The notes beneath the pieces were generated by a model, which was given only the letters and a program-made list of their open reading frames with translations, ran no database searches and was not told the origin of the DNA. The translations under genes were made by a program, and so were the position numbers. DNA of 64,000 nt from Paragordius varius (lineage: Eukaryota; Animalia; Nematomorpha), in assembly GCA_964247055.1 (NCBI GenBank), contig OZ176056.1, positions 6,634,001-6,698,000 on the forward strand, in the 5' to 3' direction. Positions 11,007-58,376 of this stretch are shown in pieces (within the stretch, counting starts at the first letter, position 1; each line of letters begins with the position of its first letter).

Positions 11007-13319
11007 TGTTAGGAAGGTAACAAAGGTATTTGCATTATAACAATAAAATTTTGAGTTACAAAACATATGATTATTACATATCACAAAAAATATAAAAATA
11101 AAACAATGCAAATCTCACAGAAAATTATATTAAAACATATATAAAATTTGCATATGCAACATCACTTCTCCCTTAAAAAAAATAATACAGTTTGAAAGAT
11201 AAAATGATGTGTTGGGTGTGTTGACGAATATAGTTTGAGAGATAATATCATGTGTTGTGTGCGTCGACGAATCATAGTTTGAAAAATAACATTCTGTGTT
11301 GTGTGTGTCGACGCGTTTGATATATGCCTAACGCCATCCTGGACCATTTCTTGATAAACTGGTCCAGTCGCACTGAAATAGTATCGGCGCTGTGGGGAAT
11401 CTGAACGGTATCCTTTTGTAACGGAAACATCCTCTTTGCGTTGAAATCGTAGAGGGTGTTGCGACTCTTTAGCCATCGGCCTGGGAAGGTAGGCGTCTTA
11501 CAGAATCTTATTAAAAGCTTGTCCGCACCAGTCTTACTTACCCATCCATCAAATGTTGAATGATGTTGAAGTCCTCCTTAGCCATTTATTGATCGTGATT
11601 CTAGAATCGCTACAGATTTTTAGCCCGTTCGCTTTCAGTGCACTGGGCGAGACATTTGCTTCCATGAATACTCCCATAACCCTTGCGCGAATGCGTCAGA
11701 GGTTTTGATTGCTGTGATCGATTAAAATTATTACCATTGCTATAATTGGTATTATCATTATATTTTTTGTGGACATGTTGGTGATATTGGCAATTGACAT
11801 TGTCATGGTTGTTGCATTTTGGACTCTATATCCACCATCCGAGTTTGGAACTCGGTGGTAGCTCCACAATTATGTTAGATTAGTTCGGATTCGCTTGGTC
11901 ACCAGATGTTAGGAAGGTAATCAAGAGTATAAATCTTTCATGGAACGTTAAAAATCCTAGAAAACTTCTTAAAGATTTTTTATCCACAGATTTTTTAAAA
12001 TCATTGATTGCTTTTACTTTATTTTTGCAAGGACTTATACCTTTATTACTTATTTCAAATCCCAGATAACTTAGTGAAGGTTCACCAATTTTTATTTTAT
12101 CTTTTCTTAATCTAAAACCTGCTAACCGATTTAAAACATTATTAAGATTTATTAAATGTTCCTGTTCAGATTTGCCAGTTACTAAAACATCATCTAAATA
12201 TTCACAACAGCCAGGACAATCTTTTATAACCTGGTCTATGACTCGTTGGTAAATTATTGGTGCTGTTGACAGTCCAAAAGGCATCCTTTTGTAGCGGGAA
12301 AATCCCTTGTGAGTTGCAATGATTAGGAGGTGTTGTAACTCTTTAGTTATGGGCATTTTTAGATAGGCATCTTTAAGATCAATATTAGTAAAAACTTGGC
12401 CTTCGCCAATCTTACTTACTAAATCATCAAACGTTGGAATGATATGAGAGTCCTCAGTCAGCTACTTGCTGATCGCAACTCTAAAATCGCTGCAAAGTCT
12501 TACCTCTCCATTCGCTTTAAGGACATCAACGGTGGGCGTGGCCCATGTCAGAGGTGTAAGGTTGGGCCAAAATATCTAACTTTTTTAATTTTAGTAATTC
12601 GTTTTCAACTTTTGCTCTTAGGGGAAACGCTCGGCGCCAAGGCCAAACTTTGGGGGAAGCATTGGGTGCTATATGAAATTTAATTTTCTCAATGTAACAA
12701 CCTAATTCCTCTTTAAATAGATTAGGGAAATTTTCAATAATTTTATCAAGTTTAAGAAAGTTAATTCGCACTTTAGGAATGTCGATGTTGAATCTCGTGA
12801 TCCAATCCAAGCCACAAATGAGCGATTTTTTCTTTCAATACACAACATTCTGCGTCCCCCAAGTTTTGCCCATTGATTTGCACTGTGACTGTTGCTACGT
12901 CCAGTAGAAGTACTATACTATTATTGTAGGCTTTTACTGGCGGTATGGGTCTAATATTTGGCTTTCCAACTTGTTTCCAGGTTTCAAAGCTGATAACACT
13001 GATGTCAGCTCCAGTGTCATAGATAAACGGTTCTGTGTTGTTTATCATTATTCTTACGGTCCATAGTGAGGTTGGAATTGCTTTTCTATAGATCTGGCGG
13101 TTGAACAAATTTTTGGCAGTGTTTTTTGATCTACATATTTTTGCGAAGTGGTGAGGTTTTCCACATTTATTGCAATTGCGGATCCAGACAGGACATTTGT
13201 TTGGTCCATGGCTACTCCCACAACGATTGCACGAATGTGTTAGGGGTTTTGCTGTTGGCTGTCGTGAACGCATGGCCTTATTATTATTGGTGTGTCGACG
13301 AATATTTGCATAAGTAACA
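11007..13319 (-). mobile_element. Rearranged Ty3/Gypsy (Mag-like) LTR retroelement with 5-bp TSD
   Basis: TG...CA ends with TSD TGCCC (11002-11006 and 13320-13324). 3' LTR 11161-11007; PPT aagggagaagtga 11174-11162; PBS TGGTGACCAAGCG 11904-11892. Gag zinc knuckles (CNRCGSSHGPNKC, CNKCGKPHHFAKIC), protease DTGADISVI, RT MPFGLSTAP and YLDD. No RNase H or integrase. Confidence 0.9.
11180..11320. repeat. Three ~44-bp tandem repeats upstream of the gypsy PPT
   Basis: Unit about a(c/t)agtttga(a/g)agataa.at.atgtgttgtgtg(c/t)gtcgacgaat, three copies. One similar unit lies at 13285-13305. Confidence 0.8.
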
Positions 13320-22387: not shown

Positions 22388-24498
<2,111 letters not shown>

Positions 24499-29744: not shown

Positions 29745-30183
29745 TTAAAAAACTACTGAAAAAACGGTCCCAATTTAATTATGCTTCTATCCTAAAAATA
29801 GGCCCTATCTAAATGAAATTTGGTTTGGAAAAAAAATTCCATATCAAACTACTTCGACTCCATTTAATTCAATCAATTTTTAAAATATCCTGTTTATTTG
29901 ATATAAAAGATATAATAAAAATCAATTTTACATTTAAATCACTTCCAACATTGGTAGAAACAGAAAAAGTTGGTTTATATTATATTAATTTCAAATTCAC
30001 ATGCACACTATCATGTTGACTAAATATTACCTTGAGGTTTTACCTAAATATAAGTAATATCAAGTATTTTTGATGGAATTTTATATTAGGTTTATTAATA
30101 TTATAAATTTTTGGATTTGGGGTATCCAACAACCCCAATTGGAATCGAGGGTCTGAAATCAATGTGTTGTATCCAAGTGTTAA
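29745..30183. mobile_element. TTAA-flanked MITE, family A (left end truncated), ending ~54 bp upstream of the KDSR ATG
   Basis: Internal family A sequence; right end gtgttgtatccaagtgTTAA at 30183. Confidence 0.75.
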
Positions 30184-30236
30184 GTGTTATAACATTAATA
30201 TTTTTTTACATACATTAAACAATATGTAAATTAAGC

Positions 30237-33200
30237 ATGCTCTTGGTAGCCGTTACAATTTTATTTGGTTTTATTATCATTTTGTATATGGTTTCCCCTC
30301 TTATATCCCCATCTTATATAAACCTTAAAGAATTACATGTTTTGGTAGTTTTACATTTAATTTTAGATAACGGGTGGATCTAGTGGAATCGGTAAATTTA
30401 TCGCAATCGAATCAATTAAACAAGGAGCTAACGTGACAATATTGGCTAGAAACCAAGTACTTTTTTAATAATGATACAGGAAAAATTATATGAAGCAAAA
30501 TTGGAAATAGAAAAGCACATGATTCATGAATATCAGGTATGTAACAATTAATAAATTAGAAAGTAACATGTATATCGATTGATGTATCAAAAGATTACTT
30601 AGCTGTTAAAAGTTCTATCAAAAAGGCCGAAATAAATGTTGGGAGGTAATAATAATTGTAATATAGATATGTTGATGTTTTGATTAATTGCGCTGGCTAT
30701 GCCAATTTAGAACTATTTGATAAAATGCAAGTTTCTGAATTTAAGGTATTTTCTTTGATTATTTCTAATCATACCCATATTAAAAACAGTATTTACAATA
30801 GGATACTCTATAAACGTAGATTATTTATTTTTTTATACCATAAATTTTTGTGTAACAAATATTTTAACAAGCATTTAGTTCGAAAATAATTTATAATATC
30901 GCTATCTCATATCCGCAACATCACTTCTTAAAAGAATAAAATTATAAATTAGAAAAAAATTTGGCTAACGCGTTTTTACTCATTTCAATTGCTTTTATAC
31001 AGACATGCATGAAATGTTATTTTTTTAGCTAATGATAGAAGTTATTCTTTTCCCCCATTGTTCATATATCCATAATAATAGGATTTTAAGTCATCAAATA
31101 ATATTTTAAAAAATTTTTTTTTGTCGTTGCAGTATACGACAGGGTGTCCAACTCGCGGCCTTCGGAGCGAATCACATAATTTGCAAAAATATTTCTCAAA
31201 AAAATTGATATCTAAACAATTTTTCAAATACATAGGCAAAAACTAAGATAAATTGTTATAGTGTGTTTGCATTTTACAGTTTTATGTACAAAATTATTAA
31301 TAAATGCATATAATCTATATATTTATAAAAATGGAAAATGCTGGCTTTGTGATCTGGTACCGGAAAACCGGTTGACCCGTTCAAATCCAAACATCGAAAA
31401 ATATAATCTTTAATTAATGCCCCGACAATAGCTTCGCCTTTTTTTGAAACAGGCCCCCAGTTAGGGCCCACCCCGTGTGAAAAACGGGTTTTTTTGAAAA
31501 CAGAAGTCCACGAAAATTGTGTCTCTGAGACAATTTTCCGGAGAACGTGTTGCACCATTCAATTTCAAATATAATTTTTGTTTACTTATTTTCGATGGCG
31601 CCGAATCGTCTCGCTTCTTAATTTAGGCCCTCTTTTTACCCGCTCCCCCCGTAAACCATTTTTCAAAAACAAAGTCCACAAAAATAATTTTTTAAATCTA
31701 TATTTCACCCAAGGTATGAGACCGTATTAAATTCAATAAGGATTCTACGTATTTTTTGTTAAAAGGCAAAAATTTTAGTCACATTTCTTTGATGATAACT
31801 ACTTAGTAACGAGCTACTGAAAAACTGACCCGTCATATCGAAATCGCGTGCTCTTGGGCCTATATCAGGCCATATGAGTTCAGTAGCTGCCTAAGGTATT
31901 ACCCGTAAAAAGTCAAAAATTTTAGTCGAGCGGATTTTTAGCGGTTAAATAAGCCCTTTTCGCCCTAAAAATGCGCTATCATTGAACTATTATTTAGTTT
32001 TGAAGCCATTCTTCCATAATCTATTAGGAATGAACGATTATTCCAGGTATAAAGGCAAATTTTTGTATCTAACTCTATTTTTATATTGGCCTCTGGGTAG
32101 GGGGCTACCCGCCTACAACTGCGCCATCATATCGATACAGCACCCTTTTGGAGCCAAATTTCAGAATAAGAGACTATGTGAATCATTTTAAAACTTCGTG
32201 CCGCATACCAAAATTGCTTATAAAATCAAAAATGCCCCCCCCCCCCCTCCAGAAGTCCGAAAGACTTCGGGCTGCGTAGCAGCACGAGATTTACGTTAGT
32301 ATATACATATATACACACTGTGTGCAAAAAAGAGGGTCATTTTGATATAACGAAAATTTTTTTTTCATGAGATAGCTTATGACCAGCGTATTCATTTGCC
32401 GCAAAAATTTTTATTTGTTGACAACCTAGTTTTTGAAATATTGAGAGAAAATCGAAATCGGGCAAAAAGTGAAAATTATGGATAATTAAGGATAATTGAA
32501 ACAATAATGATAAATTCTGAAATATTATCATTTATTATCATTTTAGGAGATAGTTTCAATATATAAATAGCCTAAAATTATATAGTTAGGGGTTCTATAA
32601 AATTTCAGGTCAAAAGATGGCGTTTCTCTTTTATCACACTTAAAAGACAAAAAAATTTAATGAAACTATATTAAAAAAAAATTTTATTTACTACCTAAAC
32701 TCACTATTAAAATCTTAACATTCATATTTCACTCAGGAAATACACCTAATCAAAATAAAACAAACAATATTGTTTTTTATTTTTGCATTTTTTTGTCATC
32801 TGGTTTATGAGTGTATAAAAAATTTATACTGTTTTATTTTGGATTCTTACATGAGTGGGAATTATTAAGTATATTATTTATCCGAAATAGGATTGAAAAT
32901 TAGTGGAATATCAACCAACAATCCGTACAAATCCCAATACAAATATTAATTTGTTATAAAACAGACTTGTTACAGGGATTTGTAAGGATTGTTGGTTGAT
33001 ATTCCACTACTCTTAAATATTTTGCATAAATTATATACTTTGTAATTCCTAATCATGTAAGAATCCAAAATAAAACAGTATAAATTTTTTATACACTCAT
33101 AAACCAGATGACAAAAAAATGCAAAAATAAAAAACAATATTTTTGGTATTATTTTGATTTAGAAGTTTATTTTACTGAATAAAATGTGAATGTTAAGATT

Positions 33201-34158
33201 TTAATAGTGAGTTTAGGTAGTAAATAATTAAAAAAAAATATTTTAATATAGTTTCATTAAATTTTTTTGTCTTTTAAGTGTGTTAAAAGAAAAACGCCAT
33301 CTTTTGACCTGAAATTTTATAGAAACCCTAACTATATGATTTTAGGCTATTTATATATTGGAAATATCTCCTAAAATAATAAACAATAATATAGATTTTA
33401 TCATTATTTTTCGAATTATCCTTAATTATCATTAATTTTCATTTTTTCCCGATTCGATTTTCTCTCAATATTTCAAAAACCAGGTTGTCAAAAAATAAAT
33501 TTTTTTGCGGCAAATGAATACGCTGGTCATAAGCTATCTCATGAAAAAAAAAATTTCGTTAAAATATTTTTTGCACACATACCATTTGCACTTCAAGAGT
33601 GTCCTTGAACACTTCAAGTTAGTCATTAAAATTTATAAATTTTGATTTAACCATAATTTTTGCATTTATTTTTTTATTTTATTATTTATTAACCTATTTT
33701 TCTTTAATTATATATTGATTCAATCAAAAATAATTTTTTTTATTTAAAAACCACTTTTTTGTTTCAAACTATTTTTTTTCAATTTAACTAAATTATTGAC
33801 TTTTAAATGTTTTTAATGAAAAATTTTAATTAATAACCCAGAAAACTTATATATTTTTTCATTTCGTATCAAAATCTTTTAAATATTCAAAATTATTTTA
33901 AGAAATTATTATTATTAAAGATATACGGTTTCTCAAAGATTAAAAGTTGATATCGATTAAAATTTATGTTAAGTAATAGAAAATAGGTTAAAAACAATAA
34001 AATAGATGAATTATTTACGATTTGATTGATAAAAGTTAAAAACAAAATAAAAAAGTCAAAGGACCAACTTGAAGTCATGGACCAACTTGAACTGTTCAAA
34101 ACTTAAATTGTTCAAGGACCACCTGGAAATTTTCAAGGACACTCTTGAAGTGCAAATG

Positions 34159-34192
<34 letters not shown>

Positions 34193-37100
34193 TCAAATTT
34201 GACCCGTTGGTTATTTTGAATTAAATATGCGGCCACTAGTGCGATTTGTGTTGAACGCCCCTGCTTTACATAGACCATTTAATTTGTGACGAATTTATAT
34301 ATTTTTATATATTTTAATTTGATATATCTATTGTACCAATTTTAAGCATATGCAATATTTAGAAATATATATATATATATATATATATTTATAAACAGCT
34401 ATAAATTATTTAAATATTTTAACCTAATAAAAGATAATTATGTAAGTTTAAGTAGTAAAAGTTTGTTTAATTAAAAATTAACGTCAAAACATTGTTTTGT
34501 GATAAAAATATTTATATTTTGATTGATTTAACTTCTAATGATTAAATCAATCCCTATAAATACAAATTAGAAATATGCTTTTGTAAATTATCCAATAAAT
34601 AATTGAAGGATTTTAGTTTTAAATATTATTTAACATAATTTTTATTCATTTCAGAATTTAATGGACGTAAATTATTTGGGGACAATTTATGCGACAAAAG
34701 CTGTTATAGAAAATATGAAAGCCAATGCTAATGCAACACTGATTGAAAATCAATGTTTCCTTAATGAACCCGTACATCATTTTATGCATTTTTTGTCTTT
34801 TTTTATTCATTCATACTACAAAAATTTAAAGATGTTGGAAATTTTTAAATAAAAAAAATTTTAGGCATACTAATTTAATTCATCTAAAATATCACGTTGA
34901 AATATAATTATTTTAGGAAAAAACCCATAATGGTCAAATGACAAATGTTAATCACGAACCCCGTATTGAAGCAGTTAAAAATTCAAATTGTCCCTGTACT
35001 TTTTCTCAATATTTTGCTCTGATTCAATCATATTTTCGCCCCACGCGAAATAAACAGCCTGAGATAGATTTGCCGAATGAATCATCATCAATTCTGCGCA
35101 ATAATGATTCAAATAATCACAATACAGATATTATAAATCCTGACGAAAATGGGGAAGAATATTCTGCTAATAAGTCTTTGCGAAAAAAGCATTTTGACTT
35201 TATTAGTGAAAAGATCAGTTTACTCAATTATATGCATTCTTTTTTCCAATGTTGGACGACTAGCAAACATGTCACCCCAGGTTATCGTATAATGTTTGTT
35301 TCAAGTCAAGCTGGACAAGCCGGATTATATGGTTGTTCGGCATATTGTGCCTCTAAATTTGCACTTCGAGGTTTGGCTGAAAGTTTACAAATGGAGGTAC
35401 ATGCTTGGTCTTGCTTCTTAAAAATCATAATTATATTTTATCGTTAAAAGTTCACTACACATAGATATAAATTTTTATTACAAGATTTATATTTATTTGC
35501 CTGTATCTATATGACCATAAAACGAAAAATATGATCAAAATATTTTTTATTGAAATTTATATGATATTGTCCTAAAAGTTTAAATTATTAGTGTCGTAAC
35601 GCTATAGTATATAATTTTATGATTCATTGAAAATTTAATTTTTTTAATAAATTTAAAAGGGTTTACAGTTTTCATAGCCAATTGTGAAAAACATAACTTG
35701 AATTATTTTATTATTTAGCTGCCTTTAATATAATAAAATATATTTTATTTTTCAAACACAAGTGGCTTACAATAATTTGCGTTTATGATATTTTTTGGTC
35801 ACGCTATAATTTTATCAAAATATTTAAAAAACTCTTAAATTTTTACCATTAACCTTACAACAAACTCCAAACGTTATGATTCTTTTGAATTAAACTCCAA
35901 ATTATTTTAATCAATCCGTTTTTTTTAAAAAAATATGGCGAGATCTGAAACGAAAAAGTTAAATTGATAACAAATCAAAAACAATTTCTGTTTCAATCCT
36001 TATATACAAACATAAATACACCATTGATTGATTTTTTAATTCATTTAGTTTAAATAGTTTGGTTTTGATGCATTTTGTTCTTGAATATGAATTAAATTTT
36101 ATAGGTGATTATGAATATATTTTATCTGGTCTTAAAAACAACCATATTTTAGATAGTATCTATAATTTTATTTTTACATAGTTAAATTTTAAGTTTACTT
36201 CATTATCCTTTATTAACTGTTTTAAGGGTGATTTTAGGTAAAAATATTTTTAACATGGTTTATTTATAAATTAACTATTTTATTGTTAGGTAAAACCCTA
36301 CAATATACGCATAACTATAGCCTATCCCCCTGATACTGATACACCAGGGTATGCCTTGGAAAATTTAACCAAAGTAAATAGATATAAATATATATATATA
36401 ACTATATATTTGAATAGCTCAAAATAAATAATTTATTGCCTGAAATTAAAATTTATGTTTATTTTTTATACATAATCTAAGTATTAACCCTACTTTTTAT
36501 CATGTAATATTATTACTTTTACAAATGAATGATATAAATATGAATTATTTGATTTGGAATCAATAATATAAATTCACATTTAAATAACCAAAAAAATGTT
36601 TATTCAGCTGTGGATACATATTATATTATTTCGTTTAATATTTTTATTATTATATACTTTTTAATCTAATTATAAAATAGCCAACTATTACAAAAGACAT
36701 TTGTCAAACATCGGGTCTTTTTAGCCCCCAAATTGTAGCACATCAATTACTTGAAGATTGCAAGGTAATTGGTATCTTATATTATAAATTTACAAAAACT
36801 AAGCATAAGTGGTTTTTTATAAAGAGATTCGTTAAGATTTTTAATAAAATAAATAAATTTTTTTCCACTTAACATTTATATAGTTATAATAAAAGGAATT
36901 TTATGTTTTCTTGATTATTTATTTTATTTTTATTTTTTCCAATTTAGTATGGCAAATTTACTTCGTTCATTGGAATGGATGGATTTATGTTACAATCTTT
37001 GACGTGTGGAATGTCACCCATAACATCCATGATGGAAGCTATATTGCAAGTTTAAAAAATATTTTCCGTTTTTTTTTTGAAAAAGAAAAACAATTGTTTA

Positions 37101-37261
37101 ACAAAAAAAACTTGAATTTTATTCAAATTTCCGATTTTAAAACGTATTCTTTAATATTTTATTTGTTTTTATAGGTCGCAACCATGTCGTTATTTCGAAT
37201 CGTTGGTCTATTTTATATAGATTCATTTGACCGTATGATCAAATCATCATTGGATAGATAA
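30237..37261 (+). CDS. KDSR: 3-ketodihydrosphingosine reductase (SDR family), 11 exons
   Basis: Exons 30237-30344, 30367-30456, 30480-30536, 30560-30645, 30667-30745, 34655-34771, 34917-35396, 36290-36373, 36681-36764, 36948-37049, 37175-37261; all introns GT-AG and in frame. Motifs: [52 protein letters not shown] and LTCGMSP. Confidence 0.95.
30345..30366 (+). other. Ultra-short spliceosomal intron 1 of KDSR (22 nt)
   Basis: GTAGTTTTACATTTAATTTTAG; removal joins HVL|ITGGSSGIG in frame. Confidence 0.9.
30457..30479 (+). other. Ultra-short spliceosomal intron 2 of KDSR (23 nt)
   Basis: GTACTTTTTTAATAATGATACAG; removal joins ARNQ|EKLYEAK in frame. Confidence 0.9.
30537..30559 (+). other. Ultra-short spliceosomal intron 3 of KDSR (23 nt)
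   Basis: GTATGTAACAATTAATAAATTAG; removal joins HEYQ|[10 protein letters not shown] in frame. Confidence 0.9.
30646..30666 (+). other. Ultra-short spliceosomal intron 4 of KDSR (21 nt, phase 2)
   Basis: GTAATAATAATTGTAATATAG; retention reads AGG TAA (stop), and removal gives [13 protein letters not shown]. Confidence 0.85.
31314..32299 (+). mobile_element. Non-autonomous Helitron (986 bp)
   Basis: 5' a|TCTATATATTTATAAAAATGG. 3' hairpins agtccgaa-agac-ttcgggct and gctgc-gta-gcagc, then TTAG|t (CTAG variant). Contains about 3 monomers of the 155-bp repeat. Confidence 0.8.
32318..33580. mobile_element. ~1.26-kb palindromic foldback element, family C
   Basis: The two ~600-bp arms are reverse complements along their length (e.g. 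catgagatagcttatgaccagcgtattcatttgccgc / gcggcaaatgaatacgctggtcataagctatctcatg) around a ~45-bp loop near 32935-32980. Confidence 0.9.
33583..34158. mobile_element. MITE family B
   Basis: TIR catttgcacttcaagagtgtccttgaa / ttcaaggacactcttgaagtgcaaatg. Confidence 0.85.
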
Positions 37262-53680: not shown

Positions 53681-56600
53681 TTAAGCAAGGCTAAACGCTT
53701 TAGGGTCATCAGAGAGTATTCGTTGTTTCATAAGTTGCATGCAGGTTAAAGCGTCTTCTTTGCTATCGTGACCACTCACTAAGATTAAAAAAATAATATA
53801 AAATTAAATTTAAAAAGGGCAAAACTTGGTTTTAAAGCTATAGTAAAATGATGTGTGCCAATAACGTAGATTTTTATAAATAAGCAATAGGATTGTTAAA
53901 TAAGCGATTTGACATACAGAAATAAAATCACCCTATCATATAACTATTAACCCAAACTATGTTGAGAGATATTTCATTTATAATATACTAAATTATATAA
54001 AACACATTCCATCATTTCTTTTTTTATATATTAACCCTGTATTTCACGATCTCTGAAATTTATTGTGGAGATATTTGAATAAAATTACCATCATCTTGTA
54101 TTATGCGTTTCAAAATGTCAACACTTAAATTTCTAAGGGCCCTCTTAAACGGTAAACCCAATCGGTGTGGAAAAACTAGGGCCGTATCTACAATATAGGG
54201 GTGTACAATTTGCAATCCGATGAGATCAGATTCCAAAGAATGACCTATCATATTAATATATGTTGTATAAATAGTACACATTTATTAATTGAAAAATTAA
54301 ATAAATATTTATAAAACTCATAAGGACCCACTCATAAATTTGGAATTTTTAGGATCATAAAATTAATATATAAAGAAAATATTTTATAAGACGTATTTAA
54401 AATAGCTCATAGGTCAACAAAAACATAAAAAAAAAACTTAAAAACTAAAAAAGTAATGAAAAAGATTATAAAAGGCACCCACACACCTAAAAGAATAGTT
54501 ATTTGATTAGCGTCAGGATCATTTCCTCTCAGTAATGTTAACACGTCTTTTTGTGCCTGTTCAAACGTAACTATGGGGAGATTAGAGTTTTGAGCATCAA
54601 AACAATTCTCAACTATACCACTCCATCGCGTATTGTAATCTATGATAGGTTGTATACGTGGGCGGACATACACATCATAAACTGTAACAAAGGGATGGAG
54701 TAATAATAAGGAAGTTTCCTTATTATTAACGTCCTTGTGATTATTGGATGTCGGTGAAACCTTTCAGTATAGAATAAATATAATTTTGTTTTTTTCAAGA
54801 CAAAAGGTATAAATTAATTTTTATAATAAGACGTATTTTTTTTCATGATAATAATTATTTTAAAGTTATGTGATTATAACTGATTAATCACCATACTTCT
54901 CTATTCAGTATTTTTCGATCCAAACCAATATGTTATAATAAAAAATCGGTGTTAAATATGGTTATCCTCAAAAATACATAAGCTCTTTGACTTTTTGAAT
55001 TTATAGAAATTTTCACTATAGTAAATTTTAAAATAATACAAAATTCATTTTACTATTTTGATAATTTTTTCAATAAAAACAACAATTTAAATCTAAATGC
55101 GCATTATGGGCTAGTTTTATTATAATAACGGTTTTACTATAAATTCATCGGGCGTTTGACCGTTAACGGTATGGGTTAATTTTGGGTCTCCATTTTCATA
55201 CATTTTATTAGGAGAGCCAACAAATCCAATCATTGTAATTCGGGCAATTTCGGAACCCAATGGTGTATAAACCATTTCACAATCCAAGCTATAAACTTTA
55301 AGCGTGTTGGCTTTGAGTTTTATTAATTCTTGAGGGGTTGAGGGTATAAGAGGCATACTAGTCATAATACCAGCATTCTCAGCACATAAATTTATGTTTG
55401 AGCTTAACAAACGGAGATTAAGTTGTCCACTGCTGGTCGAATTGAAATCGAAAATATTAGTGCTACTCTTCCATTGTTCATTTATGTGTTGTTTATGGTT
55501 TAAAAACCAGGATTTACAAGGAGCTTTATTTGAGGCGGATGTTGATGTTAACATAGAATCTAATCATGAAATCAAATAAAAAAAGGGTTAATGTTAATAA
55601 AAAAGGGTCCTATACCCATACTAATCCAAAAATCAAAACCTTTAAAAATCAAAACCTCATTGATGCCTAAGGCAACTTCACAAAATTAATTATAATAAAC
55701 TCAATCAATAGTTACCACCCATATAGCTTAATTTTTCACTATATAAAAAATTGGCTTATAAAACACAATTTACCATTGTTTGAGATTAGGGTAGGAATGT
55801 AGAGTGGTAAAGCCTTATCCGTACAATGTAAGTTTGCTAGTGTACACCCCGGTTCAGAAACCGAAGCTCCACAACACACATATTTGACTAGGGTTGAAGT
55901 AGCGTTTCGTTTACTGCTCGTACCTCCAATTTTACGGAGTCGGCCCCAATGATATAGGCATTCTTCGGGTTTAGCATGTTGATATGTGACAGATTTCGAC
56001 ATTTGTTTTTCATTAAAAATGAATGTGTCATTTAGCCCTAAAATAAAGAGTTTTTGTAACTTTTGTGGGTAAAAAACTTGATATTCCATATCCATAATTA
56101 TCAAAAAGCTTTGCCGAAAATATTTACAATTATTTATATATATTTATTTAACAAAATGATTTGAGTATATGAAAAATGACACGAAACACCAAAAATTATT
56201 TAATGTGTTTAAACCTTTGAATTCGCAGTGGCGTTTATTACCATTTTCATTCGCCTCTTTCGCCCAAAGCTCCTTGATTTCATACAATTTATTACATCGG
56301 GAACAAGTTAATTTGTGTAAGTAGGTATAACTCTGTAAATGATGTTTTGCCAAAGAATTATTTGAATTTTCATTGAGATTTTTTGATTTATCAAGGGCAG
56401 TTAGTGAATGCAAAATAAGGGAATCATTATGTATCGATATTTTAGCGGAACAACCAGATTTGGTGGTAGAATGGGGCGTATTTGTCAAAGGGGGTGCAGG
56501 ACTTTTGTTTGCAGAAGATCTGTTACCGATGCCAGTACTTAAAGGATCTGTAGGCCTAGGACTTGGATCTATACATACACCATATAATTTTGAGTCTTTC

Positions 56601-58319
56601 TGAGTCATGGTGTTGTCCTCATTTTTCTCATTTGTGGCGAAGGATATAAGATAGGGGTACCCATTTGAACGTAATTGAACAAGTGTCATAAGGTATGGTA
56701 ACAAGTTAAGAGCAAACGTTTCTTCCGTAAAACCATCATCGACATTAGAACAAGGGACTGCTTTCCGATGCAATTTGTGTTTAAGTGTAGGATCCAATGA
56801 TATTTGATGTGATTCTGAAGCCAAAATAATTGGTATTGGGGCAGTTCCACCTCTGATAGCTTTAATGTGAGATGCGGCCAAATTAAAGTATGTGTTTTTA
56901 TTTCCTTTACCCCTAACGTAACAATCATGTTCGGCTTGAAAGGCATATTGTTTAATTTCATGATATATGTTATCTATTAACTTATCCATTGTATCATCTT
57001 TAGTTTTACATTGATTTACAAGGCGGTCAGGAATGTTGGGTAAAGCCTTAATGTACTCCACGTGAAAAAGGGCAAGATATTTTTGTCGGGTATTATAAGG
57101 GATTTTGGTTAAACTAGCATTGTATTGATTAATAACACTAGGATCTATGCTAAATTTAATACCATCACAATAAACTTTGTATTCATTGAGATTGGGTGGT
57201 TGAACGTTAATAGATGATAGTATGGGAGTAGAATTTTTTCTGGAATGATTCTGAGATACATTATTTGAATTAGGTTTGGAGATCAGTGATTTCTATATAT
57301 TTACAAGGTGAAAAATAGATTAATCAATCATATAACACAGTTATTTAGAAAAAATAAATACCGAAGGTTGATTAGCTATATTATAAGCTATCCTAGCATC
57401 TTTACCACCAAATTTCCTTATATTAACACAAGTCGAATTATCGACAACTTTTTTCTTCTCAGAGGTTAAGGAACTTGAAATAGATAAATTCGCACTTTCT
57501 GGAGATTTAGATTGTTCGATTAAGTTTTTCATTTGTGCGCGAGCTTTTAAACATGTATCCTGAAACGAAATATCATCATTTTTATTATTTTTTGACAACT
57601 TTGTGTGTATTTCACTTGAGGGGTCCAATTTTGCTTTTTTAATTCTTATATAATTAAAATCAGTTTCAGTATTGTTTTTATTGTTTGTACTTTTCAATGG
57701 TGATGATTTAGAAATCAAGGGACCCCCTTCCATTTGTAAAAGTAATTGTTTGGCTTCAGACGGTAAAGAATTGTCACCATCTCTTTTATTCTGTTTACAT
57801 AATCATAATTTATAAAAGTATATTAGAAAAAAATAAACTTGGGTAAAAAGTATTAAATGAAATTATTACGGTGTATTATTTAGATGACAAGGTTTAAAAA
57901 TAATAGATTAGAAATAAAAGTTACCTTTTCATCCAAAATGTCGTTTGATAATGTAGTTAATCTATTACTAATTTTTTTGGGCGATATAACAATTTTGTTA
58001 GATTCATCATCTATGTTTACTTCAATAAAATCATTTTCATCGTCTGAATCGCCAAATATTTCCTCTTTGTACATAGTCTCAGGACATTTATTTTCATCAG
58101 ATTTATTTACATTTACACCTAAAATAATAATTTCAATACCTGATGGCATATTTTTTGTTAGAACATGTTTAGCTTTTAATAAATGAATTGGAGTAGGGTT
58201 ATAAACAGGGATTATAGTAGGAGAGTCAGACTTGTCGGTGGATTTCTTGATTGAATTAGCCATCAATTCAAAAATAGAGTTTTTTGACTTGTTCATATTG
58301 CACTTTAACTTTAGTTTCA
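53681..58319 (-). CDS. REXO1: RNA exonuclease 1 homologue (DEDDh 3'-5' exonuclease); 5' exon(s) not located
   Basis: Exons 58319-57925, 57790-57362, 57292-56215, 56037-55774, 55559-55161, 54681-54487, 54244-54089, 53778-53681; phases are consistent. Motifs: [24 protein letters not shown]...YVCCG...[37 protein letters not shown] and HDSKED. The first exon starts at a phase-1 acceptor. Confidence 0.93.
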
Positions 58320-58376
58320 CTAAACAATATGGAAAAGAGTTAAATATTTTTTATTATCTAATAATTGTGCTGTATA

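Follow-up and report, generated by a model that had tools for sequence, protein, structure and literature searches.

Four putative introns of 21 to 23 nucleotides share a KDSR gene with a 3.9-kb intron in the nematomorph Paragordius varius

A stretch of 64,000 nucleotides (nt) from Paragordius varius (Nematomorpha), corresponding to positions 6,634,001 to 6,698,000 of contig OZ176056.1 in assembly GCA_964247055.1 and referred to here as the window, carries a gene for 3-ketodihydrosphingosine reductase (KDSR) whose first four introns appear to be only 21 to 23 nt long. Judged from the sequence, and with a probability that we place at about 0.85, these four segments (micro-introns i1 to i4) are genuine U2-type introns, three of them ancestral and shrunken and one lineage-specific, that would be read by means of an initial GTA, a branch adenosine at about position +15 to +16 and the next AG. 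What sets this case apart is the setting: four micro-introns stand at the 5' end of the gene, the intron after them measures 3.9 kb, and the region is rich in repeats. The segments had been pointed out in an earlier note on this DNA, and the analysis reported here follows up that note; all coordinates are positions in the window.

Results

The KDSR gene occupies positions 30237–37261 of the forward strand and is complete; it was rebuilt exon by exon, and its 11 exons give a coding sequence of 993 nt and a protein of 330 amino acids (aa). In order, the ten introns measure 22, 23, 23, 21, 3909, 526, 893, 307, 183 and 125 nt, the last five of these lying between exons 6 and 11, and each of the ten starts with GT and ends with AG. 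Residues 1–325 of the rebuilt protein are 53–57% identical (E ~1e-133) to named animal KDSRs, including those of a hemichordate (Glandiceps), molluscs (Lottia, Patella), an annelid (Capitella), a lancelet, fishes and frogs. The protein contains the cofactor motif TGGSSGIGK and a Y-x-x-x-K region (adh_short match), and no further lesion was found across 990 coding nt. An exhaustive protein search with the open reading frame (ORF) of exon 7 returned vertebrate and invertebrate KDSR fragments only, with no cDNA-derived close relative among them, and a profile search with the protein P0057 and four exon pieces returned at least 120 named KDSRs; among the matches listed, none came from a close relative of this genome.

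The four micro-introns separate the first five exons, all on the forward strand. Exon 1 (30237–30344, 108 nt) starts with ATG, encodes an N-terminal membrane helix, ends in ELHVL and aligns with Capitella and Branchiostoma KDSR from residue 1. It is followed by i1 (30345–30366, 22 nt, GTAGTT...TTTTAG, phase 0) and by exon 2 (30367–30456, 90 nt), which encodes the NAD(P)-binding glycine motif and is 73% identical to P0057 over 30 aa. Next come i2 (30457–30479, 23 nt, GTACTT...ATACAG, phase 0), exon 3 (30480–30536, 57 nt), i3 (30537–30559, 23 nt, GTATGT...AATTAG, phase 0), exon 4 (30560–30645, 86 nt), i4 (30646–30666, 21 nt, GTAATA...ATATAG, phase 2) and exon 5 (30667–30745, 79 nt, VLINCAG...SEFK). 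The long intron 5 (30746–34654, 3909 nt, GTATTT..TTTCAG), which lies at an ancestral position, leads to exons 6 to 11, also on the forward strand (34655–34754, 35281–35396, 36290–36373, 36681–36764, 36948–37049 and 37175–37261, the last with the stop codon). The coordinates, lengths and ends of the four GT-AG segments were thus found exactly as the earlier note had given them, and so were the flanking exons of 108, 90 and 57 nt and the presence of six other introns of 125–3909 nt in the same gene.

Each of the four segments, if kept, brings a stop within a few codons of the KDSR frame, in agreement with the note's claim that retention breaks the frame every time; retained i4 supplies in-frame TAA stops. 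Excision of all four yields a 140-aa N-terminus that is colinear with KDSR orthologues; junctions 1 to 3 are free of gaps, and junction 4 has one extra residue (GR/Y vs GP-). The choice of segments was compared with its alternatives by listing all removals of GT..AG segments of 15–60 nt from 30237–30745 that leave an open frame and scoring the resulting paths against the N-terminus of Capitella KDSR. Among the 4218 stop-free GT-AG paths, the fewest introns per path was four, and the top score went to the four-intron path first proposed. The near-tie paths only alter i1 (a 19- or 28-nt variant with the same acceptor) or shift i3 by 4 nt, and every one of them adds, drops or substitutes residues; the 19-nt variant of i1 (donor at 30348), for example, is stop-free, adds one residue and scores lower. 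Both i2 and i4 are common to all top-scoring paths listed. Because GT..AG segments of 21–23 nt are frequent in the window (about 5 per kb per strand), the motif alone is weak evidence and the weight lies in the context; GT and AG bound all four of the frame breaks, and f(GT) x f(AG) is 0.0017 per fixed pair.

Intron positions were compared with those of the KDSR loci of Capitella teleta (L008), Branchiostoma (L010) and a mammal (L004), for which exon chains were rebuilt and aligned jointly; the KDSR part of the mammal locus is 88–90% identical to named mammalian KDSRs. The first three micro-introns fall at alignment columns 44, 74 and 95, all in phase 0, and coincide there with introns 1–3 of both Capitella (2220, 61 and 58 nt) and Branchiostoma (247, 276 and 176 nt). 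In the mammal the homologous exons likewise measure 90 and 57 nt, with phase-0 boundaries at homologous codons, and the introns at the positions of i2 and i3 are about 2.5 kb and 4.2 kb long. Over the whole gene, 8 of the 10 introns, and five of the six long ones, occupy ancestral positions. The earlier note had placed human exon boundaries at c.108, c.198 and c.255. The part of this statement that concerns mammalian exons 2 and 3 (90 and 57 nt, phase 0) stands; the c.108 boundary has a homologue in Capitella and Branchiostoma, and c.108 itself lies outside the mammal comparison, in which exon 1 was mis-predicted. A literature search of KDSR mutation papers for the human c.255/256 boundary found no paper.

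The fourth micro-intron (column 124, phase 2) lies 20 nt downstream of a phase-0 intron (column 117) that is present in Capitella, Branchiostoma and the mammal, and this column-117 ancestral intron (after ...IKQ/IRQ) is absent from the KDSR gene of the window. Two histories would account for this: loss of the ancestral intron together with gain of a micro-intron close by, or sliding of the intron. The 526-nt intron (34755–35280, phase 1) is also unshared; it adjoins an 8-residue insertion, ANANATLI, and splits what is ancestrally a single exon (RLM...LQME in Capitella, lancelet and mammal). Across this region runs a 169-aa ORF (34938–35447), which was considered as a decayed duplicate of exon 6 or as a Rossmann-fold insertion of 135 aa; both readings were rejected. 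The ORF is mostly sequence of the 526-nt intron, and upstream of GYRIMF nothing in it resembles the KDSR profile, whereas exon 6 scores 30 bits.

Inside the micro-introns the sequence signals are few. All four start with GTA, vs a background of 27% of GT..AG segments, and in all four a TAAT begins at +13 or +14 counted from the 5' end (+14 in i1, +13 in i2, where another starts at +10, +13 in i3 and +14 in i4). TAAT at this place occurs in 2.3% of the 660 GT..AG segments of 21–23 nt in the window and in 5.5% of the subset whose A+T content is 80% or more; the element, present in 4/4 (n=4) vs 2–5% of the background, may hold a candidate branch-point adenosine. The note had described TAAT as ending 4–7 nt before the 3' end in all four segments; this is real (5, 7, 7 and 4 nt in i1 to i4), but it is better put as a fixed +13/14 from the 5' end, since the distance is variable to the 3' end and constant from the 5' end. 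The micro-introns are 78–86% A+T vs 62–74% in the flanking exons. Neither of the features of U12-type introns that were looked for in the four segments, an RTATCCTT 5' end and an TCCTTAAC branch site, was found in them. An Rfam search of the window returned neither a small nuclear RNA (snRNA) nor any further RNA family.

Whether the segments exist in DNA was examined by placing contigs of four public runs (X1, X5, X6 and X13) on positions 29800–32300; all of them appear DNA-like or repeat-only. A 926-nt contig of X1 (30217–31143) runs across all four segments; it shows six substitutions and leaves the lengths of the segments unchanged. One of these substitutions lies inside i3 (30544 A>G) and leaves its length as it is; the two exonic ones, read by hand, change ATA to ATC (synonymous) and GAA to GAT (Glu to Asp). 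The contigs of X5 and X6 carry the window's alleles at those segment positions that they cover. Segments of unchanged length in other read sets indicate that these are not assembly or indel errors. The view that they are shrunken real introns, which the note had based on ancestral positions, gains from these DNA contigs as well as from the positions and phases of three of the four.

Several observations weigh against the reading of the segments as U2-type introns. The shared motif was chosen post hoc and in four introns only, and i4 has no positional homologue in the compared species. KDSR-like genes of two other species (P0098/L001 and P0132/L006) differ in their N-terminal intron positions, from which it follows that the shared positions belong to this orthologue group and not to every relative. 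RNA-labelled public runs of the same species label contain none of the sampled locus words. Finally, the contigs of X6 retain at least i1 and i4, which would amount to intron retention if X6 were RNA. They cover only 30239–30744, starting directly behind the ATG and stopping one base short of the donor of exon 5, and none lies on the unique part of the intron (30808–31227); X6 is filed under a different organism label, and five unaligned letters follow beyond 30744, the break starting one base before the donor. We think that X6 is low-coverage DNA, because its ratio of repeat to unique depth is DNA-like and because the break falls one base short of the donor.

Among the alternatives, the one that survives best is a refinement of the reading as U2-type introns, in which the introns are real but their splicing is inefficient or conditional, a large share of the KDSR transcript keeps one or more of them and is non-productive, and the micro-introns act as a brake on expression. 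We regard it as unlikely. The short introns of microsporidia have a median splicing efficiency of about 25%, according to work cited in PMC13644364, and the X6 contigs stop at the edges of exon 1 and exon 5 yet keep i1 and i4; however, those contigs are most simply low-coverage DNA, given the DNA-like depth ratio and the place where the unaligned letters begin. KDSR, moreover, catalyses one single housekeeping step that is essential, and apart from the segments this gene is intact.

A decaying or untranscribed pseudogene, in which the segments would be insertions that resemble introns, is very improbable. No transcript was seen in the RNA-labelled runs that were examined and that lack the locus words, and a high-copy repeat ends only about 20–50 nt upstream of the KDSR ATG. 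Against this, the 990 coding nt hold no other lesion, GT and AG bound every one of the ten introns, three of the four segments sit exactly on ancestral intron positions, unlike random insertions, and the exonic differences between X1 and the window are confined to one synonymous change and one change of Glu to Asp. The explanation that the segments are assembly or sequencing artefacts that do not exist in real DNA is close to refuted, for the contigs of X1, X5 and X6 keep them at the same length and X1, with six differences from the window close by, is not merely the same consensus. Equally hard to credit is removal at the DNA level, by a process like that of ciliate internal eliminated sequences (IESs) or by programmed DNA elimination, instead of from RNA: the size range is like that of the shortest ciliate IESs, but the ends are GT..AG rather than TA..TA, other animals have spliceosomal introns at the same positions and the segments, kept in the DNA contigs, are missing from none of those listed, though most joints are not displayed.

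The surroundings of the gene are rich in repeats. High-copy repeats lie around the KDSR 5' exons, at 29800–30219 and 31228–32300; in the DNA-like runs their summed contig depth is 1,000–10,000 times that of the unique part, and they occur in runs under five organism labels, A to E. The 3.9-kb intron contains a foldback element of about 1.2 kb (32348–33561) with nested inverted arms of 44–160 nt that are 80–93% complementary. The proportion of G+C in the window is about 0.24–0.31 except for a retroelement at 8–16 kb; there, on the reverse strand at 11162–13273, remnants of a long terminal repeat-type retroelement (reverse transcriptase and aspartyl protease ORFs) form the only part of the window that is richer in G+C (0.35–0.39), and a search with the reverse transcriptase ORF found a nearest database protein that is just 52% identical. 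Neither this search nor one with a 305-aa ORF told anything about the taxon.

When the window was searched for further micro-introns between long open frames, no convincing one emerged. On the reverse strand at 58119–58139, near the start of a gene with ORFs at 55120–58320 (weak EloA-BP1 match), there is a 21-nt segment, GTATTG...TTTTAG, that is in frame and stop-free and may be another micro-intron; because read-through stays open, its sequence does not decide the matter. A homeobox exon (Homeodomain, E = 1e-16) at 23971–24456 of the reverse strand ends in VKIWFQ followed directly by GT and then by a long intron, and by eye its homeodomain appears to be NK1-like.

Discussion

From the anatomy of the four segments we infer the act of splicing itself, a branch point and a length ruler. 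The same spliceosome would remove introns of 21–23 nt and introns of 125–3909 nt from the KDSR pre-mRNA. Three ancestral bilaterian introns would have shrunk to near-minimal length, and the fourth micro-intron would be specific to the lineage, placed beside an ancestral intron that has been lost. Recognition would rely on a reduced set of signals, namely GTA at the 5' end and a branch-like TAAT with adenosines about 15–16 nt from the 5' end, and the first AG 5–8 nt beyond those adenosines would be used, with no polypyrimidine tract. Such a set may serve as a length ruler across the intron and replace the usual separate 5' and 3' signals.

Taken further, the four segments probably, though with clearly less assurance than attaches to their being introns at all, represent a discrete class of 21–23-nt introns that is defined by this ruler (GTA, branch adenosine at about +15/16, next AG) and supplied from two sources, ancestral 5' introns that shrink and new micro-introns such as i4, in an animal whose one spliceosome also removes kilobase introns filled with repeats. 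Introns below 30 nt would then be present in a third animal lineage, so far unpublished, and this would be the first uncoupling of extreme shortening from genome compaction. The earlier note had already stressed that ultra-short and long introns coexist in one gene, and this holds for introns of 125–3909 nt, the 3.9-kb one carrying its 1.2-kb foldback repeat. The note had also suggested a reduced or altered U1/U2/U2AF machinery; this is not required, because myxobolids with equally short introns have canonical U2 snRNA and U2AF (PMC13644364).

About 30 nt was long assumed to be the lower limit for animal introns, and the published cases in animals of introns below 30 bp are those of myxobolid Myxozoa and Dicyema only, in a survey of 51 genomes with no nematomorph in its main text (PMC13644364). 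Median intron lengths are 27 bp in Henneguya salminicola and 22 bp in Thelohanellus kitauei and Myxobolus rasmusseni (PMC13644364). According to that 2026 paper, the introns below 30 bp of myxobolids and Dicyema have only GTa as a 5' signal, nothing but AG at the 3' end and two to three adenosines, and the distance from adenosine to AG grows with intron length, i.e., the adenosines are fixed from the 5' end (PMC13644364). The KDSR micro-introns likewise fall below 30 nt in a narrow range (21, 22, 23 and 23 nt) and carry GTa, a bare AG and adenosines at a fixed 5' distance, in a sample of only four, and the match of motif with the myxobolid and Dicyema pattern is suggestive. The list of known ultra-short introns in the earlier note (ciliates, nucleomorphs, microsporidia and dicyemids) therefore needs updating, since myxobolid Myxozoa belong in it (PMC13644364).

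The micro-introns resemble those of myxobolids in being animal GT-AG introns within 20–27 nt, at conserved positions, with GTa/AG signals and no polypyrimidine tract, in a parasite. In myxobolids, however, the short class makes up the bulk of introns, the genomes are compact (20–200 Mb) and short introns have short neighbours, whereas here the micro-introns stand beside introns of 125–3909 nt in one gene and in repeat-rich DNA; 6/10 of the KDSR introns belong to that longer range, and the window is repeat-rich with few genes. The lineage differs as well, this KDSR being 53–57% identical to bilaterian proteins. Dicyema japonicum (Lu et al. 2019 and Zverkov et al. 2019, as presented in PMC13644364) is closer in that it is a bilaterian parasite with introns below 30 bp, conserved positions and reduced signals; its genome, as presented there, is small and compact with short introns dominant, whereas here the lengths are bimodal within one gene. 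Both published animal cases have been explained as genome reduction in tiny parasites (PMC13644364).

Outside animals, ciliates (Paramecium, Stentor 15–16 nt), chlorarachniophyte nucleomorphs and microsporidia also have introns of near-minimum length in a very narrow range, but nearly all introns of those lineages are tiny, and the short introns of microsporidia are poorly spliced. A canonical spliceosome has been reported for Stentor, as cited in PMC13644364. The ordinary minimal introns of animals (about 50–90 nt; 50–63 nt in Capitella KDSR) obey the same GT-AG rule at the same positions and phases, and the micro-introns are two to three times shorter. A literature search found no paper on short introns in Nematomorpha, and the genome report of Gordionus montsenyensis, which gives 26.93% G+C, 63.8% repeats and a BUSCO score of 71.6%, never mentions introns; the G+C and repeat content seen here is in line with its figures.

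The same extreme shortness and reduced signals occur here beside a 3.9-kb repeat-bearing intron in one gene, and compaction cannot be the whole explanation of such introns; one spliceosome would have to cope with intron lengths that differ nearly 200-fold within a transcript. Many aligners and gene finders work with a minimum intron length of about 20–40 nt. With such minimum lengths, genes like this KDSR would be mis-predicted or counted as missing, and this mis-prediction could inflate the gene loss reported for such genomes and lower their BUSCO scores (71.6% in Gordionus). For the evolution of introns themselves, the new position of i4 is a hint that, where such a system operates, a short insertion can turn into an intron immediately.

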